Sequence record: NC_019408.1 | Length of the DNA stretch: 64,000 nucleotides | Reading direction: 5' to 3' (one strand) | Position numbers and translations under genes: made by a program | In this document: in pieces, positions 39,481 through 53,133 of the stretch | Position numbering within the stretch: position 1 is the stretch's first letter | Layout: each line of letters opens with the position of its first letter | The notes under the pieces: model-generated | What the model was told of the DNA's origin: nothing | Seen by the model: only the letters and a program-made list of their open reading frames with translations | Databases searched by the model: none

Positions 39481-40133
39481 ACGAGGCGGTCTCCTGCTCC
39501 TAGCGCGCGCTCTCCAGCCTTTCCGAGGGCGATGCGCCGGACCTGCTGAGCAAGGGAATCCAGAGCGAGGCAGCGCTCTGCTCCCCAAAGAGTGGGCCAA
39601 GCGGTGCGGGCGGAAAGGCTCGGGGTCCGTGGCTCCATGCAATGCGCAGGAGAGACCGTGCTCCTTCTGACGCAGCGGGCGCCCGACGTTGCGGGTCGTG
39701 AGGCGAGGCCGGCCGAGATGATCAACGGCCTGGGGCGGGAGGGGCTTGACCTCTCCCGCATCCGCCTCTAGCGTCACCATCAATCAGGCGCAGCACTGCC
39801 TCACGATCGGACCATGTTCGGCTCCCGGTCCTGGAGCTTGGAAGCCTCACTCTGGAGCAGGACTGCCGCTGCGCCGGGGACGGTTTGGACGACGCACCCG
39901 TCCATGAGGCGAACGCCGGCCAAGACATGGCACGAGGCGTGACGGGGACCAGAGGTCCCACTCCATTCGCCGCGCCGGCGGCAGCAAAGCTCATTGAGCG
40001 GATGGTGGCACGGGCGCGAGCCCGATTTTGAGAGCCAGCGGAGAGCCACCTTCCTCCCTGGCCCGGCGACGACGAAAGCTGGGTGGCTGTAACCGCTCGT
40101 CTGAGGGATGCGTCCCCAAGATCATCAAGACGC
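39481..40133 (+). ncRNA. Candidate large ornate ncRNA (~650 nt), GOLLD/ROOL-class by size and context; family unverified
   Basis: Promoter immediately upstream, terminator downstream, no credible ORF. More than 10 helices of 6-10 bp, including crossing pairs. Confidence 0.7.
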
Positions 40134-40164
40134 AAAAGGCCCCGATCTCGCGATCGGGGCCTTT
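40134..40164. terminator. Bidirectional intrinsic terminator
   Basis: AAAAGGCCCCGATC-TCGC-GATCGGGGCCTTT between convergent RNA genes. Confidence 0.85.
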
Positions 40165-40171
40165 CAAATTC

Positions 40172-40260
40172 TGGAGCTACGGGAGGGACTCGAACCCTCA
40201 TAGGTGTCGCCACCAGCAGAGATTTGCAGTCCCGCGCCTAACCTCTCGGACCACCGTAGC
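40172..40260 (-). tRNA. tRNA-Cys(GCA) with a long variable arm, CCA encoded
   Basis: Acceptor GCTACGG/CCGTAGC, anticodon loop CT-GCA-AA, T arm GAGGG-TTCGAGT-CCCTC, U73, 18-nt variable region with GGTG-GCGA-CACC. Confidence 0.85.
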
Positions 40261-40440
40261 AAAACGGGACTGACGCCCGAAGGCCCAGCCCCGTTCCCGA
40301 CGACCCAAGGGAGTGCCGTAGCTGTCCCAAGGAGCACCGTGACGGCGTGGCAGGCGACTGAAGCCGTCAAGTCGAAGGGCTTCCGGCGCCGGTCACCCTA
40401 ACCTCCGGGCTCTTGCGAGCGCGAGTGAGGTCCTCCTACG
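40261..40440 (-). ncRNA. Structured ~180-nt leader or ncRNA co-transcribed with tRNA-Cys
   Basis: Minus-strand promoter TTGCGG, 17-nt spacer, TATAAG (-10 at 40452-40447). Hairpins with GCAA and UUCG tetraloops. Confidence 0.4.
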
Positions 40441-40542
40441 CCGATCCTTATAGCCGAGCCTTCACGCGTCCGCAACGAAAAATGTGTCGTGAGCGATGAC
40501 TTTTTCCTTGACACCTTCGATTAGGCTCTGGTAGAGAACAGG

Positions 40543-40945
40543 CATCGTTGTAATTCGGACAACGGAAACGGCGGCAAGACGGGGGTGCGATTCCCCCCGC
40601 CTCCACCACCACGAGCCCCTGGCGCTGGGAGTACGCGACTCCTGGGCAGGGAGTGTTACCCTGGCGGACCATTGCTGGCCCGAGCCAAAGGTAGCCGGGG
40701 GTTCTTGATGCTGGGGGCGATCAGCTTCGATTGGCGCATGTGACTGGAAGACGCAACGGTGGGTGACCTCCAGGCCAGCTTGCTGGTGATCGGGTCGAAG
40801 CAACAGAAATGTCGCTGCAAATGACAACGCTCCGTTCGCGGTGCGTGAAGCCATCGCCGCCTAATAAGCGGTAGAGGCGTGTCCCGGCGGACGCGCGTGT
40901 CACAAAAAGGCCCTGCATCTACGGACCGGGGCCAGTCCGCCACCC
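40543..40945 (+). ncRNA. ssrA: Two-piece (circularly permuted) tmRNA; tag peptide ANDNAPFAVREAIAA
   Basis: Acceptor piece has T arm GGGGG-TGCGATT-CCCCC and CGCCTCC-ACCA (40598-40608). Coding piece starts GGGGGCG (40713) and gives a G3:U70 pair. Tag reading frame 40817-40861 is followed by TAA TAA. Promoter TTGACA at 40508. End points are approximate. Confidence 0.92.
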
Positions 40946-41046
40946 ACCTTTCGCAGGCGGGGACCTAACTTCGGATGTCTGTCGGGCGATGGATGTTCAC
41001 CTTGGGTCCCCGTCTTCGAAAGGTGGTCGAAAGACCGTCTAAAAGA

Positions 41047-41125
41047 CGCGGGGTAGAGGAGTCCGGTTGTCCTCGTCTGGCTCATAACCAGAAGATCAGG
41101 GGTTCAAATCCCCTTCCCGCTCCCA
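41047..41125 (+). tRNA. tRNA-Met(CAU), initiator-like, CCA encoded
   Basis: CGCGGG start with a mismatched first pair, A11:U24, anticodon arm TCTGG-CTCATAA-CCAGA, TTCAAAT loop. Confidence 0.8.
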
Positions 41126-41383
41126 GGACCTGAACGCCGAGGGACTCCCAAAGAACGACGGCGTGACACGCTCGGAGAGAACGAGCACTGCAATCCGGGC
41201 TATGAGACCGTGATGTAGCGGACGCCGAAGCGAGAGCAGGCGTGACACCTGGAGAGACGGGACCAGTTTTCCAGGCCGCATGCCCGGCGCACAAGACCGC
41301 AGGCTTCGGCCGTAGGGCAGTGTCAGGGGATGAGGCTAGTCCCCGGCCCAAGGGCTAGGGCATGCGGCTTGGAAAGCTGGTTT
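41126..41383 (+). ncRNA. Candidate ~255-nt pseudoknotted ncRNA between two tRNAs
   Basis: 24-bp helix 41262-41285/41358-41381, duplicated ACGCC..GGCGTGACAC..GGAGAGA module, crossing pair GCACTGC/GCAGTGT. Confidence 0.6.
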
Positions 41384-41470
41384 GGTACGGTGGCTCGACA
41401 GGTAAGGCATCGGCCTCATAAGCCGAGGGACTAGCTCCCGATCCTGGTTCAAATCCAGGTCGTACCTCCA
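41384..41470 (+). tRNA. tRNA with CAU anticodon (Met or Ile2) and a long variable arm, CCA encoded
   Basis: Acceptor GGTACGG/TCGTACC, anticodon arm TCGGC-CTCATAA-GCCGA, variable arm GGGA-CTAGC-TCCC, T arm CCTGG-TTCAAAT-CCAGG, U73. Confidence 0.85.
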
Positions 41471-41477
41471 AAAAGCA

Positions 41478-41509
41478 GGCGGCCGTCGGGGCGACCCGGC
41501 GGCCGTTTT
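41478..41509 (+). terminator. Intrinsic terminator of the tmRNA/tRNA transcript
   Basis: GCGGCCGTCGGG-GCGA-CCCGGCGGCCGT followed by a T-tract. Confidence 0.75.
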
Positions 41510-49365: not shown

Positions 49366-50988
49366 TTACTTGTTGGCGAACGCCGCGACGTAGGCCTTGG
49401 CGTAGGCTTCCTTGTAGAGCGGGCCGACGTCGTCGTTGTTCTCGTCTTCGAGGTCGGTGAAGTTCGAGTAGTGCTCGCCCTTCTCGGCGTCGAGGTCGAA
49501 CGTCTCGGCGTACTCGCCCTCCAGGCGCCCGTCGCGGTCGCCCGCCAGCTTGGCCCAGGCCGCGTAGTGGTGGACGAGGACCTCCTCGAACGCTTCCTCA
49601 TAGAGGTACGAGTAGGTGCCCACGCCCTTGTCGGCGCTGGCGCTGTTGTCGAGCGCCGATTCAGCCACCACGTCCAGGCGCTCGCCTTCGGGGCCTTCGC
49701 CCTCGACGAGGTCGACCAGGGCCTGGAGGCGCACGCCTTCGTCGGTCTGGCTCATCGCCTGGGCGATCAGCTTCTCGGCGTCCTCGCGGCCCCAGGACTT
49801 GGCCATGGTCGTGGCCAGATCGTGGTCGACGGCGGCAAAGCCGTTGGCGTCGTAGGCGGGGGTCTCGTCGGTCGAGGCGGTCTCTTCGACCTTCTCGTCC
49901 GAGGCGTCGTCAGTGGCGGCGGCCGAGAAGCCGACGCCATAGCCCTTGACATAGCCCTCCGAGTACGCCTGCCGGGCCGAGTCGGGGCCGTCGGTGAGTT
50001 CGCCCGGCAGATCGAAAGACGCGTCGTACTCGTAGCCGTTGTCCTGGTCGGCCGCACCCGCCTTCAGGCCAGCGTCGTGGCCGATCTTGGCCCAGTCGGT
50101 CGCCTCGGCTTCGACCACCGCTTCGGGGGCCTCGGTGGTGATCACGCCGTCGGCGGCCGTGGCGTCGGTCTCGATCTCGGGATCGACCTGGGCCTGGGCG
50201 TCAGCCTGGGCGGCCTTCTCCTCGGCGTAGCGGCGCTCGACGGCGGCGGTGAAGTAGTTGACCGCGTCGGCCTCGGGGATTTCGCCCAGGACCTTCATCT
50301 CGCAGCAGCGCAGCTTGGTGAGGTTGTAGTCGGTCGGGATCGCCGTGACGTCCTTGGGGTTGATCTCGACGATGATGATCTTGCCCCGGCCGCCGTGGAA
50401 CGAGCGCAGGTAGTCGAACGAGCAGGCGTGCAGGCCGCGCGAACAGGTCTGGTTGCGGTTCGGGTCACAGAGGTCGCGATCCATCGAGACCGTGCTGCCG
50501 ATCTTGTACTCGACGGTGTGTGAGTGCAGGTCGAAGTAGTCCTCGCCCACGCGCTTGAAGGCATGGAACATGCCGTCCGGCGTCAGCGGGTTGCGACCCT
50601 TCTCCAGGAAGGCGTAGAGATCGGCGGCGATCGACTTGTCGGGGTTCTGGTCGACATTGGCGATGAAGTTGGTCAGCGGCTCCATGTCGAAGCCTTCCGC
50701 CAGCACGCGCTTGAAGGTGCCGGCCGCCACGTAGTCGACGACCTTGCCGTCCAGGCGCAGGCGGTCGCGATCGTCCAGGATGACGCGGCCGAACGAGTGG
50801 GCCGCCACATAGGCCGCCACGTCGGCGATCAGCCGGATTTCGTCGATGTCCTGCGGGACCTTCTTGACGGCCTCTTCCAGCTTCTTGCCCTGCGACGAGC
50901 CGCGAGGGAAGGAGCGGTAGCGCCCGTCCAGGGTGATCGAGATCGCGTCGACGGTGATCGTCACGGCGACCTTCGCTTGGGTAGTCAT
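49366..50988 (-). CDS. rIIB: rIIB-like protein with an acidic C-terminal extension
   Basis: LYAFLE...P.TPDG.F.AFK.V..DY.D.HS, CS.GLHACS..YL..F and V..NPKDV.AIP.DYN..K.RCC. Confidence 0.75.
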   Translation of the reverse strand: MTTQAKVAVTITVDAISITLDGRYRSFPRGSSQGKKLEEAVKKVPQDIDEIRLIADVAAYVAAHSFGRVILDDRDRLRLDGKVVDYVAAGTFKRVLAEGFDMEPLTNFIANVDQNPDKSIAADLYAFLEKGRNPLTPDGMFHAFKRVGEDYFDLHSHTVEYKIGSTVSMDRDLCDPNRNQTCSRGLHACSFDYLRSFHGGRGKIIIVEINPKDVTAIPTDYNLTKLRCCEMKVLGEIPEADAVNYFTAAVERRYAEEKAAQADAQAQVDPEIETDATAADGVITTEAPEAVVEAEATDWAKIGHDAGLKAGAADQDNGYEYDASFDLPGELTDGPDSARQAYSEGYVKGYGVGFSAAATDDASDEKVEETASTDETPAYDANGFAAVDHDLATTMAKSWGREDAEKLIAQAMSQTDEGVRLQALVDLVEGEGPEGERLDVVAESALDNSASADKGVGTYSYLYEEAFEEVLVHHYAAWAKLAGDRDGRLEGEYAETFDLDAEKGEHYSNFTDLEDENNDDVGPLYKEAYAKAYVAAFANK

Positions 50989-51009
50989 GGGAGACTCCTT
51001 GCTCGCGGC

Positions 51010-53133
51010 CTAGTAGCTGCCGAACTTCAGGGTGAGAGGGATGGTGCGAATCAGCGCTTCCAGGGCCTTGGTGCAGGCGGTGACCTGCTCGGTCGAGGTC
51101 GCGTGGTTCGTGTTGTCGAGGAACTTGCGGATCGGGTGGTTGGACGTGGCGTTCAGCTTGGTATGACCCTCCTCGAACGTCTTGGTCAGTTCCGAGCGCG
51201 GCGGCGCCTTGAACTGCCCGTCCACCTCGTAGAGCGCCTTGATGAAGGAGCGCTCGCGCTCGGTCCACTCGACGAGGCCGGCGGCCAGCAGCGGCTTGAC
51301 CGCGCCGAAGTAGGCCGCGACCGACGACTTCATCCGCGTCAGGCGGTCGAAATCGGCCGGGCACTTCTCGATCGCCCGGTTGTAGAAGCCGTAGGCCGTC
51401 GACGAGGTCGACAGCTTCTGCACCGCCACCACGCAGTCATCCAGGCTGACCTTGTGCTTGGCCTGGATCGCCGCGTCGATCGCCTCGCGCATGGTCGGGA
51501 CCTTGGCGTCCTCGACGTGCTTCTGGGCGGTGGGCGAGGCGATGTAGATGTGCTTGATGCCGTACTTGTTGGCGACGACGAAGACGTCCTCGGCCTTCTT
51601 GCGGTACTGGTCCGACGACACCCAGGCCACGGTCCCGGCAGGGAAGGTCTCCACGCCGGTCACCGCCATCTGCTCGCCCGCGCGCTTGGCCAGGGCCAGA
51701 CCCCGGATCGGCGGCACATAGGCGGGCGCGTCCTTGCTGACCTTGTCGCGGCGCGGGACCTCGCCCTTGAGCGTGGCCACGTCGATGTCCTCGAACTTGG
51801 CGGTCGGCAGGGCGCAGTTCCAGAAGGCCTTGTCCCGGTCGTAGCCGAGCATGAAGACCCCGTCCTTCAGGTTCTTGCTCTCCAGGTAGAGGCGCAGGAT
51901 GCGCGCAAGGCGGCGCGTCTCGCTCTGGGAGAACTCGCGCTTGGTCGAGTCGTCGCGCGACGGGTCGAGCAGGTCGGAGATGTCGCGCAGGACCAGGAAG
52001 TGGGTTTCGGCCTTCTGGCTCAGGTCGAGCGTGTTCTCGATCCGGTAGCCCCAGCGCTCGCGGTGCTGGTCGAACGAGGCCTTGTAGAGGCAGGCCACGC
52101 CAGGGAAGGAGATCGTCGTGCTTTCCAGGCCCGTGGCCGGGTGCTTGGGCTTGCTGCTGATGAACGGCGGGCGCAGCTTGTTGTGGGTCGCGAAGAACTC
52201 GGTGACCGACTGGATGTCCTTGATCTTGACCCAGATCGCCGCCTCGACGTCTTGGCTGATCGTGCCGATGATGTCTTGCAGGGCCTTGACCGCTTCGGGC
52301 TTGTACTGGATTTCTTCCCGCGACGGGATGGGCTCGACCGTGCCCATCGGCACCGTGATCAGCCACTTGCGGCCGTTGTCGTGGGGCAGGCTCAGACCGC
52401 CCTTGGCGGCCAGCGGGTAGATGGCGCAGCCCTGGCGCACGTTCCACGTCGCCGGCAGGGCCGAGTTCTCGTAGGCGGCCCAGGTGCCGTCGGCGGCTTC
52501 GTACTGCGGCATGCCCAGCGGCTGGCCCAGGTCGATGTTGCTGTCGTACATGGGGATGAAGCCCATGGCGACGTTCTTGACGGCGCGCTCGAAGGAGGCG
52601 AAGTCGGTGGGGTTGACCGCGACGGTGACGCGCACGCCGGCCGGCTCGGAGCAGTCCTCGGTGCCCTGGAGCATGACGCGCGGCACGCCGCCCTTGCCGA
52701 TCGCGGCGGTGTAGTGGCGCACGACGTCGCCGTCGTAGCAGGACAGGGCGAATTGGGAGGTGTAGGCGAACGGGCTCTTGGAGCCCAGGCCGAAGGCGCC
52801 GGTGAGATCGTCGGTCTCGTCCTTGTCCGACTCGAACAGGGTCGAGTAGAGGTGCATGACCTTGGCGTGGTCCATGCCGGGGCCGTAGTCGCGCACGTAG
52901 AATTCGGGGCGCATTTCGCTGGGGACGTGGACGAAGAAGCTGCCGGGGTAGCCGGCGACGATATGGGCGTCCTGGGCGTTCGAGCAGATTTCCCGCACCA
53001 GCGAGCCGATCTTGTCCGAGTAGAGCCCGTCGATCAGCATCCGGAACGCTTTGCCAGACGCCTTGATCTTGAACTCTTGCTCCTCCTGAACGCCGATGGT
53101 TTCGAGGAAGACCGGTTCGGTTGCAAGCCGCAT
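51010..53133 (-). CDS. rIIA: rIIA-like protein (N-terminal GHKL/HATPase domain)
   Basis: LYSDK..SLVREICSNAQDAH, VRDYGPGM and GAFGLGSKSPFAYT. Paired with the rIIB-like gene. Confidence 0.8.
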   Translation of the reverse strand: MRLATEPVFLETIGVQEEQEFKIKASGKAFRMLIDGLYSDKIGSLVREICSNAQDAHIVAGYPGSFFVHVPSEMRPEFYVRDYGPGMDHAKVMHLYSTLFESDKDETDDLTGAFGLGSKSPFAYTSQFALSCYDGDVVRHYTAAIGKGGVPRVMLQGTEDCSEPAGVRVTVAVNPTDFASFERAVKNVAMGFIPMYDSNIDLGQPLGMPQYEAADGTWAAYENSALPATWNVRQGCAIYPLAAKGGLSLPHDNGRKWLITVPMGTVEPIPSREEIQYKPEAVKALQDIIGTISQDVEAAIWVKIKDIQSVTEFFATHNKLRPPFISSKPKHPATGLESTTISFPGVACLYKASFDQHRERWGYRIENTLDLSQKAETHFLVLRDISDLLDPSRDDSTKREFSQSETRRLARILRLYLESKNLKDGVFMLGYDRDKAFWNCALPTAKFEDIDVATLKGEVPRRDKVSKDAPAYVPPIRGLALAKRAGEQMAVTGVETFPAGTVAWVSSDQYRKKAEDVFVVANKYGIKHIYIASPTAQKHVEDAKVPTMREAIDAAIQAKHKVSLDDCVVAVQKLSTSSTAYGFYNRAIEKCPADFDRLTRMKSSVAAYFGAVKPLLAAGLVEWTERERSFIKALYEVDGQFKAPPRSELTKTFEEGHTKLNATSNHPIRKFLDNTNHATSTEQVTACTKALEALIRTIPLTLKFGSY

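Follow-up and report, generated by a model that had tools for sequence, protein, structure and literature searches.

Can a transfer RNA (tRNA) carry a long variable arm and still receive the amino acid that its anticodon specifies? The question is raised by two tRNA genes, one with the anticodon GCA (Cys) and one with CAU, in the genome of the Caulobacter phage CcrRogue, a phiCbK-like siphophage of the Dolichocephalovirinae. In bacteria, the long variable arm belongs to Ser, Leu, Tyr, and Sec tRNAs, and synthetases discriminate tRNAs by this arm. The window analyzed here is a 64-kb stretch corresponding to bases 62001–126000 of the 223,720-bp CcrRogue genome (JX100814 / NC_019408), and coordinates refer to this window unless a genome position is given. 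We find that both genes are real, conserved tRNA genes, and we propose that they encode elongator tRNAs that are probably charged with cysteine and methionine by host synthetases.

Two phage tRNAs with a class II-type core

Three tRNAs were called by ARAGORN within the window: Cys(gca), a 79-nt CAU tRNA, and an 87-nt CAU tRNA. The first and the last carry the long arm, and both are annotated in JX100814 as plain tRNA-Cys and tRNA-Met. Their features are as follows.

40172..40260, minus strand: tRNA-Cys(GCA), 89 nt including the encoded CCA, with a long variable arm (ARAGORN; Rfam RF00005, 35.8 bits; covariation across 11 phage copies).
40225..40227, minus strand: the Cys anticodon GCA, at tRNA positions 34–36 (ARAGORN anticodon position and sequence reading).
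40200..40217, minus strand: 18-nt variable region of the Cys tRNA, with three unpaired bases, a 4-bp stem GGUG/CACC closed by the GNRA loop GCGA, and three unpaired bases.
41384..41470, plus strand: tRNA(CAU), 87 nt including the encoded CCA, with a long variable arm (ARAGORN; Rfam, 47.1 bits; covariation across 10 phage copies).
41417..41419, plus strand: anticodon CAU of the long-arm CAU tRNA (ARAGORN anticodon position and sequence reading).
41427..41442, plus strand: 16-nt variable region of the CAU tRNA, with a 4-bp stem GGGA/UCCC, a 5-nt loop, and three unpaired bases on the 3′ side.

Both scores lie above the RF00005 gathering score of 29. In both tRNAs, the acceptor stem has 7 bp, the T stem 5 bp, and the D stem 3 bp with a loop of 10 nt; U73 and the encoded CCA are also common to the two. 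The first-pass annotation, made from the sequence of the window, had described similar acceptor and D regions, a variable region of 16–18 nt with a 4-bp stem, and U73 in both genes; the 5′ stretches match at 20 of 25 nt, and the ARAGORN cloverleaves and our reading of the arm agree with this description. Its proposal of a class II-type core was likewise borne out in both genes by the 3-bp D stem, the large D loop, and the hairpin in the variable region. Class II tRNAs have a variable region of more than 10 nt with a stem-loop, and the phage tRNAs have 18 nt (Cys) and 16 nt (CAU). The anticodons GCA and CAU break the rule that bacterial class II tRNAs serve Ser, Leu, Tyr, and Sec. When the D-arm motif of the phage tRNA-Cys was searched in IMG/VR, about 80 of the 89 matches had the short class I spacing; because most motif matches are thus short tRNA-Cys, the D-arm part of this class II scaffold is an ordinary trait of tRNA-Cys.

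Selection on the cloverleaf and on the arm

Covariation was examined in alignments of 11 Cys genes and 10 CAU genes from related phages. The variable arms were out of register in the MAFFT alignments and were therefore excluded from the pair counts and assessed in each sequence separately. Standard cloverleaf pairs were formed at 94% (Cys) and 99% (CAU), with 13 and 10 two-sided pair changes, respectively; none of 500 shuffles reached the observed values, and sliding of the pairing partners abolished the covariation signal. Acceptor and T stems were 100% paired in both alignments, and the anticodon loop, the T loop, and CCA were invariant. U73 and GCA were invariant across the 11 Cys copies, and the CAU gene has U73 in eight phages and C73 in Kikimora.

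The variable-region hairpin was present in all nine long-arm Cys and all nine long-arm CAU copies. Its stem differs by lineage and is always paired, as GGUG/CACC, GGC/GCC, CGC/GCG, or GGUC/GACC in the Cys tRNAs and as GGGA/UCCC, AGGGC/GUCCU, and AAGGC/GCCUU, among others, in the CAU tRNAs, and GNRA tetraloops cap most of the stems. Averaged over the arms, the folding energy is about −5 kcal/mol, compared to −0.9 to −1.5 kcal/mol for shuffled sequences, and none of 1000 shuffles reached the observed value. Since the hairpin persists while its stem sequence changes, and since shuffled sequences fold weakly, we conclude that the structure of the arm is what has been kept.

One member of the subfamily provides the armless counterpart. 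In CcrBL9 (Bertelyvirus), the equivalent block holds a 77-nt tRNA-Cys and a 77-nt CAU tRNA, both without the arm. The class I tRNA-Cys of this phage can be aligned with the long-arm Cys genes over their full length except for the hairpin, and it is their nearest relative outside the family (identity of 0.73–0.74, and 0.74 for the Rogue gene, anticodon and arm excluded).

We considered that the genes might act outside translation, as decoys, regulatory RNAs, or decaying copies. Both lie in an island of non-coding RNAs, and some allo-tRNAs appear to be unused in translation (PMC5389517). The single-sequence folding z-scores, −0.8 and −1.6, are unremarkable and count for this explanation; in the minimum-energy fold, the acceptor, variable, and T hairpins are present while the D and anticodon arms are misfolded, so that the case for the two tRNAs rests on covariation and not on thermodynamics. 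Against it, compensatory change has held the full cloverleaf together with an invariant anticodon loop, T loop, and CCA, and the two genes are the only Cys tRNA and the only elongator-type CAU tRNA of the phage. A role outside translation is thus highly improbable, the least probable of the explanations considered here.

Probable charging with cysteine and methionine

In the scheme that we favor, the phage would use both genes as working elongator tRNAs. Host cysteinyl-tRNA synthetase (CysRS) would charge the GCA tRNA with cysteine for the decoding of UGC and UGU, and host methionyl-tRNA synthetase (MetRS) would charge the long-arm CAU tRNA with methionine for the decoding of AUG. What sets them apart from ordinary Cys and Met tRNAs is a class II-type core, in which a short hairpin of 3–5 bp, mostly GNRA-capped, occupies the variable region and is followed by 2–4 unpaired bases. 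We place the probability of this cognate charging at roughly 60%, on the basis of U73 together with GCA for CysRS, the dominance of the CAU anticodon for MetRS, arms that resemble those of Tyr and Leu and not those of Ser tRNAs, and the absence of A73.

The tRNA bodies were scored against isotype profiles with the anticodon masked and the arm removed; this is a crude classifier, correct for 95 of 149 held-out tRNAs, and its results indicate a lean and not a proof. The Rogue Cys body scored best on the Cys profile, at 41.0 bits compared to 29.5 bits for the next best, and in each of the nine Dolichocephalovirinae phages with a long-arm gene, the Cys profile ranked first for this body. The Rogue CAU body scored 36.2 bits on the elongator-CAU profile, with Cys second at 31.8 bits; the elongator-CAU profile was at the top in eight of nine phages, usually with Cys in second place.

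U73 and GCA are the chief determinants of CysRS (PMC5389517, PMC7609411), and this enzyme tolerates a long arm, as the cysteinylation of the selC* tRNA-Cys shows (PMC5389517). The CAU gene has no initiator features, as it carries G1-C72 and an anticodon stem without three consecutive G-C pairs. Its G2-C71 and U3-A70 pairs are invariant and fit the host-genus CAU tRNA that starts with GGU, not the one with C4/C5, which would be the TilS substrate if the Escherichia coli rule applies. Here and below, the host genus is represented by one Brevundimonas genome with 48 tRNAs; Brevundimonas hosts several of these phages. In 195 open reading frames of the phage, AUG occurs 1055 times and AUA 13 times among 51,741 codons, and among the 28 ARAGORN calls in the CcrRogue genome, the sole Cys tRNA and the sole elongator-type CAU tRNA are the long-arm genes. 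The phage was searched for domains of TilS-type proteins, class IIa synthetases, CysRS, and MetRS, and none was found; consequently, host enzymes must charge both tRNAs.

The main rival to a tRNA-Met concerns the CAU gene. It could be a tRNA-Ile2, in which the host TilS makes lysidine at C34, isoleucyl-tRNA synthetase charges the tRNA, and the rare codon AUA is read. By itself, a CAU anticodon fits either Met or Ile2; the phage has Ile(GAU) tRNAs and none for AUA, phage tRNAs sometimes supply rare codons, and the Rogue copy carries C5-G68. However, the scarcity of AUA relative to AUG speaks against this reading, and the phage would then be left with an initiator and without an elongator Met tRNA. 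C4-G69 and C5-G68 are determinants of the Escherichia coli TilS, which may not hold in Caulobacter. In the phage genes, the 4:69 pair varies between A-U and G-C and is never C4-G69, whereas 5:68 is C-G, U-A, or G-C. Pairs one to three agree with those of the host-genus CAU tRNA without C4/C5, U73 stands in place of the A73 seen on host-genus and phage Ile tRNAs, and a host enzyme would be needed for lysidine formation, as the phage has no TilS-type domain. We regard a tRNA-Ile2 as unlikely, although less so than either a serine tRNA or a role outside translation.

Arm geometry and the question of serine

The first-pass annotation had also suggested that the two tRNAs might be charged with an amino acid that does not match the anticodon, such as serine. 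We compared the arms with those of the other arm-bearing tRNAs of these phages and of the host genus, writing the geometry as unpaired bases on the 5′ side / stem base pairs / unpaired bases on the 3′ side.

Extra-arm Cys: 2–3 / 3–4 / mostly 2–4 (1 in Bajun); Rogue, 3/4/3.
Extra-arm CAU: 0–1 / 3–5 / 2–3; Rogue, 0/4/3.
Extra-arm Lys: 1 / 3–5 / 4.
Extra-arm Trp: 1 / 3–4 / 3.
Extra-arm Asn: 1 / 3–5 / 2.
Ser: 1 / 5–7 / 1 in 9 of 11 phage tRNAs and in 4 of 4 host-genus tRNAs.
Leu: 0–2 / 3–5 / 1–3.
Host-genus Tyr: 1 / 2-bp hairpin with GAAA loop / 3.

The extra-arm tRNAs are built like Tyr and Leu tRNAs, not like Ser tRNAs. Leucyl- and tyrosyl-tRNA synthetases (LeuRS and TyrRS) require A73 (PMC9976931), and this base is absent from all extra-arm Lys, Cys, CAU, Trp, and Asn tRNAs of these phages. 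The extra-arm Trp and Asn tRNAs retain their usual G73, whereas Lys and CAU tRNAs have A73 in the host genus and U73 in the armed phage form. The change from A73 to U73 on the armed Lys and CAU tRNAs fits selection against leucylation or tyrosylation; this argument is weakened by the occurrence of U73 on the short CAU tRNA of CcrBL9 and on short phage Glu and Gln tRNAs.

If seryl-tRNA synthetase (SerRS) recognized the extra arm, one or both tRNAs would be wholly or partly serylated, and serine would be placed at Cys or Met codons during infection. For SerRS, the anticodon plays no part in recognition, which depends on the arm and on tertiary shape (PMC9976931), so that the concern about serine is a legitimate one. 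Bacterial Ser tRNAs have G1-C72 and G2-C71 (PMC9976931), and G73 as the discriminator. Both pairs are present in the CAU tRNA, which also has C11-G24, and the Rogue Cys tRNA has C2-G71; the U73 of both occurs in some phage Ser tRNAs. The Ser profile is the best one for several long-arm Cys tRNAs from tRNA arrays.

Several further observations weigh against cognate charging as a whole, and some of them favor serine. The CAU copy of Bajun scores best on the Ser profile. The phage tRNA-Ser(CGA) of phiCbK, Kabachok, and Bajun itself has U73, so that this base is no barrier to serylation, and a long arm with G73 or U73 was held to be compatible with SerRS and was taken as the Ser signature of allo-tRNAs by Mukai et al. 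(PMC5389517). Our arm-geometry rules derive from E. coli and Thermus thermophilus, not from Caulobacter. U73 is unusual for Met tRNAs, and both host-genus CAU elongators have A73. In E. coli, A73 is a minor determinant of tRNA-Met. Finally, wastewater RNA libraries hold contigs from relatives, at 90–95% likeness, that span parts of the locus, among them the greater part of the Cys tRNA, but such contigs cannot show transcription.

Against serylation, the Cys and CAU arms have 3–5 bp with 2–4 bases on the 3′ side, in contrast to the 5–7 bp with single flanking bases of most Ser tRNAs. The Rogue Cys body reaches only 29.0 bits on the Ser profile compared to 41.0 on the Cys profile, and for the Rogue CAU tRNA the Ser profile is outside the top four. 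The anticodons are strictly conserved, and CAU for MetRS and GCA with U73 for CysRS are strong determinants. Moreover, an advantage of replacing Met or Cys by Ser throughout the phage's own proteins is hard to see. Serylation is therefore very unlikely, only a little less so than a role outside translation, and the suggestion of non-matching charging finds no favor in arms unlike those of phage or host Ser tRNAs, bodies that are not Ser-like, and ends that retain the features typical of their isotypes.

Origin of the two genes

The first-pass annotation had further regarded the two genes as paralogues made by anticodon swapping. The part of this view that stands is the shared type of body; direct paralogy of the Cys and CAU genes is unproven from sequence comparison, and each body is nearer to its own isotype. 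Within one phage, the identity between the Cys and CAU bodies is 0.56–0.71, against a background of 0.50 ± 0.07 between different isotypes with a 99th percentile of 0.66. Only Colossus and CcrPW exceed this percentile, Rogue and BL57 lie just under it, and the values in the other five phages are ordinary. A swap between GCA and CAU needs the substitution of all three anticodon bases.

The host-genus tRNA-Tyr resembles the phage Cys tRNA in its arm design, with one unpaired base, a GC-GAAA-GC hairpin, and three unpaired bases, and in its 3-bp D stem; it differs in A73 and U35. The anticodons GUA and GCA are one base apart, and derivation of the Cys tRNA from a tRNA-Tyr is possible on this comparison, but we did not adopt it, as the Cys profile scores above Tyr.

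For other armed tRNAs, recruitment of class II bodies to new anticodons seems to have taken place, judging from their profiles. For the armed Asn(GUU) bodies, Leu is the top profile in all three phages that have them (L245, 10055–10143; L246, 322–405; L248, 4686–4771; 46, 38, and 37 bits), and these tRNAs retain the Asn-typical U1-A72/G73 end despite a Leu-like D arm and body. In Colossus and CcrBL9 the armed Lys(CUU), and in Colossus also the armed Trp, fit the Ser profile best, and all of these keep the discriminator of their new isotype.

Distribution in phages, hosts, and tRNA arrays

The arm is found on further isotypes of these phages. In CcrRogue, Lys(CUU) and Lys(UUU) are 87 and 90 nt long and have a hairpin arm and U73. 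In the main tRNA clusters of five relatives (L245–L249), extra-arm Lys tRNAs were found in phiCbK, Colossus, and CcrBL9, extra-arm Trp tRNAs (G73) in Colossus and Bajun, with a Trp tRNA of 82 nt in Kabachok, and extra-arm Asn tRNAs (G73) in Colossus, Kabachok, and Bajun; in other members, these isotypes are present in short form. The extra-arm Lys tRNAs resemble the Cys and CAU tRNAs in U73 and a short hairpin, which is followed by four unpaired bases on the 3′ side. They lie at a different locus, and the Lys(CUU) bodies of Colossus and CcrBL9 are Ser-like, unlike the own-isotype bodies of the Cys and CAU tRNAs. The long-arm Cys and Met tRNAs are thus part of a broader phage phenomenon of extra-arm tRNAs.

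In the Brevundimonas genome, long arms occur on five Leu, four Ser, and one Tyr tRNA only, as expected from the confinement to canonical isotypes that the first-pass annotation had assumed. The tRNA-Cys of this genome has 74 nt and U73, and its Lys tRNAs, like both elongator-type CAU tRNAs, have A73. For a wider view, alphaproteobacterial genomes were searched with patterns that combine the anticodon loop of a Cys or CAU tRNA with one common form of the T loop, set apart by the class II spacing. The Cys pattern matched in 3 of 401 genomes of the class and 4 of 61 genomes of the family (one genome, G001, in both), and none of the matches was a tRNA gene by ARAGORN, so that no long-arm Cys gene was found in the 461 genomes sampled. 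The long-spacing CAU pattern had no match in 151 genomes of the class and 61 of the family (211 genomes in all). The earlier reading depended on long-arm Cys and Met tRNAs not being common in alphaproteobacteria, and no such gene was found in the samples searched. The matches in Caulobacteraceae genomes (L413, L415–L417) resemble the 3′ halves of Gly, Ala, or Lys tRNAs with no full ARAGORN gene, and these half-tRNAs may be leftovers of integration sites.

In IMG/VR, six unrelated viral contigs carry a long-arm Cys tRNA (L015, L026, L037, L077, L144, and L176), and about a dozen other viral contigs carry a long-arm CAU tRNA; long-arm Ile(UAU), Trp, Thr, and Asn tRNAs appeared as by-catch in the same loci. 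Four of the unrelated viral long-arm CAU tRNAs (L231, 12350–12433; L235, 3431–3514; L238, 2178–2262; L243, 654–738) have a Leu-like D arm, a UUCG- or CUCG-capped variable arm, and apparently A73, and from these features they could be leucylated despite the CAU anticodon. The anticodons that recur with an extra arm (Cys, CAU, Lys, Trp, Asn, Ile-UAU, and Thr-UGU) read codons beginning with A or U. Isotypes for codons beginning with G or C (Arg, Asp, Glu, Pro, and Val) were represented with an arm by single or doubtful calls, in a small sample that came from the Cys and CAU searches.

A scan of one genome per prokaryote species yielded at least 77 long-arm Cys genes in at least 120 loci. Among the matches listed, most long-arm Cys genes were 91–98 nt long and Sec-like and came from Desulfobacterota-like, Acidobacteriota, and Actinomycetota records; from their sequence and taxa, we read these as the selC* type of Mukai et al. 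(PMC5389517). About 16 of the matches listed were 7/5 Cys genes of 83–95 nt, with U73, an arm of 3–4 bp, and about three unpaired bases after it. The majority lie in dense arrays of 7–27 tRNA genes, a layout typical for phage or mobile tRNA arrays.

Relation to known long-arm tRNAs

A full-text search of the literature, with incomplete coverage of subscription journals, turned up no account of phage tRNAs for Cys, Met, Lys, Trp, or Asn that join a long arm to a 7/5 branch. Among the closest published relatives is the selC* tRNA-Cys (Mukai et al. 2017, PMC5389517), which is bacterial and has GCA, U73, and a long arm, and is cysteinylated by CysRS. It differs in mimicking Sec tRNA, with an 8/4 branch, long D and anticodon stems, a length of 91–98 nt, a link to sel genes, and sometimes the anticodon UCA, whereas the phage Cys tRNAs have a 7/5 branch, 85–89 nt, an ordinary tRNA-Cys body, and a 3–4-bp arm. 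The allo-tRNAs (Mukai et al. 2017; Krahn et al. 2020, PMC7609411) are bacterial or phage tRNAs with long arms, anticodons other than those for Ser, Leu, and Tyr, and often U73 or G73. An 8/4 or 9/3 branch defines them, and they are presumed either to accept Ser or to act outside translation; in contrast, the phage Cys and CAU tRNAs have a 7/5 branch, isotype-typical bodies, and arms unlike those of Ser tRNAs. With their 7/5 branch and 3-bp D stem, both phage tRNAs thus fall outside the selC*/allo-tRNA definition, which asks for a branch of 8/4 or 9/3 and a Sec-like D arm; the 91–98-nt Cys sequences from the genome scan differ visibly from them.

The nematode nev-tRNAs (Hamashima et al. 2012, PMC3333845) likewise combine a class II shape with anticodons for class I amino acids. 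However, they are eukaryotic, derived from tRNA-Leu, and charged with Leu against the anticodon, whereas in the phage Cys and CAU tRNAs the acceptor end and discriminator follow the isotype of the anticodon, or at least avoid A73.

The locus in CcrRogue and its relatives

A permuted transfer-messenger RNA (tmRNA) and an initiator-like CAU tRNA lie between the Cys and the long-arm CAU genes. The remaining features of the block are as follows.

40130..40161, minus strand: terminator-like hairpin with a 10-bp stem, a 4-nt loop, and TTTT, directly 3′ of the Cys tRNA (sequence reading).
40546..40864, plus strand: permuted two-piece tmRNA (Rfam RF04321, 88.2 bits, E = 1.3e-16).
41047..41125, plus strand: initiator-like tRNA(CAU), 79 nt, with C1 opposite U72, C73, and CCA (ARAGORN; Rfam, 50 bits).
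41126..41383, plus strand: non-coding spacer of 258 nt that separates the initiator-like tRNA from the long-arm CAU tRNA (three frames read, none with a long open frame).
41480..41509, plus strand: terminator-like hairpin followed by TTTT, which closes the block of tmRNA, initiator tRNA, and CAU tRNA (sequence reading).

The block sits between A1-like/methylase genes and a helicase gene and was kept in every member of the subfamily inspected, namely phiCbK, Swift, BL57, BL10, Colossus, CcrPW, and the Brevundimonas phages Kabachok, Marchewka, Kikimora, and Bajun. CcrSwift has an annotated rho-independent terminator at the place equivalent to 41480..41509. A scan with consensus promoters and terminators, which needs five T in eight positions, flagged nothing at the tRNA ends, and both hairpins come from direct reading of the sequence. 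A leader-peptide attenuator was also considered and rejected, as no short Cys- or Met-rich frame is present in 40261–40560 (minus strand) or in the 258-nt spacer. No tRNA-related families were found among the neighboring proteins, and the annotated gp125 frame matched no family.

The tmRNA is absent from the JX100814 annotation. From the Rfam alignment, its tag reading frame ends ...ANDNAPFAVREAIAA. ARAGORN detected permuted tmRNAs at the equivalent place in phiCbK, Swift, BL57, CcrPW, CcrBL9, and Bajun. The phage genome paper gives tRNA counts, reports that Rfam detected no functional RNA beyond tRNAs, and mentions neither the arms nor the tmRNA (PMC3556154). The initiator-like tRNA shares the discriminator of the host genus in Rogue (C73) and has U73 in Colossus; the Brevundimonas initiator tRNA has C1 opposite A72 and C73 instead of the usual A73.

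Other tRNA genes of the subfamily show further peculiarities. U73 replaces the host-genus A73 or G73 in phage Glu, Gln(CUG), Lys, and CAU tRNAs (genome 48466–52917 and L245–L249), as well as in Ser(CGA) of phiCbK, Kabachok, and Bajun, Thr of Bajun, and Ile(GAU) of Colossus, and from these sequences a discriminator shift to U73 looks like a subfamily-wide trend. The Ile(aat) called by ARAGORN at genome 52564–52638 is a register error, and its loop CUGUUAA and U1/G73 ends fit a tRNA-Asn(GUU). The Ala(tgc) called at genome 149330–149403 is doubtful, being without CCA and without an Rfam tRNA match. At genome 50907–51053, His and Ala tRNAs of 71 nt have unusual folds. Irregular (8/4) Ser and His tRNAs were described in alpha-proteobacterial phage clusters in the allo-tRNA paper (PMC5389517), and the tRNAs at 50907–51053 are probably the irregular (8/4) tRNA-His of such clusters reported by Mukai et al.

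Possible roles of the arm

As a weak guess, the arm may set the phage tRNA apart in structure from that of the host for some tRNA-binding enzyme, or it may lend robustness to folding. More specifically, and in line with the resistance to host tRNA nucleases suggested by the first-pass annotation, the arm might protect the phage Cys, Met, Lys, Trp, and Asn tRNAs from a host nuclease or toxin, or from a phage enzyme that depletes host tRNAs, and leave their charging unchanged. This explanation is compatible with cognate charging and concerns only the role of the arm. It draws on the structural selection of the arm, on its recurrence on several isotypes in lineage-specific patterns, on its presence on tRNA-Cys of unrelated phage contigs and mobile tRNA arrays, and on the lack of matches in the alphaproteobacterial genomes sampled (461 for Cys and 211 for CAU). 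Anticodon nucleases and VapC-type toxins are known to attack Lys, Cys, Trp, and initiator Met tRNAs. On the other hand, the phage tRNA escapes from nucleases that are known to us act via the anticodon loop and not via the variable arm, and some toxins recognize a long arm as a handle, which would turn it into a liability. No tRNA-related protein adjoins the genes, and the Cys, CAU, Trp, and Asn tRNAs of CcrBL9, a phage of the same host, are short. We consider protection a tentative possibility, somewhat more plausible than a tRNA-Ile2.

A broader proposal, which we hold slightly more doubtful than protection, is that the phages of this subfamily, as well as other phages and mobile tRNA arrays, place the arm as a functional mark on a defined set of tRNAs, here those for Cys, Met, Lys, Trp, and Asn, which all decode A- or U-initial codons, and that a targeting enzyme distinguishes phage from host tRNAs by this mark. 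If so, the mark would be a structural code of self and non-self in the tRNA core, and the enzyme would be a host defense or a phage factor that removes host tRNAs. The change from A73 to U73 on the Lys and Met tRNAs would then be the price for avoiding mischarging by LeuRS and TyrRS.

Implications

The plain tRNA-Cys and tRNA-Met labels given by annotation pipelines conceal the extra arm. If charging proved non-cognate, the two genes would represent phage-driven recoding. If charging is cognate, as we propose, the long-arm tRNAs would be natural examples of identity that is kept while the tRNA core is rebuilt, with the short versions of CcrBL9 as natural controls, and they would be of use for tRNA engineering, for example of orthogonal or tagged tRNAs. 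Infection of Caulobacter crescentus by phiCbK or CcrRogue offers a tractable system for asking how the arm benefits the phage.

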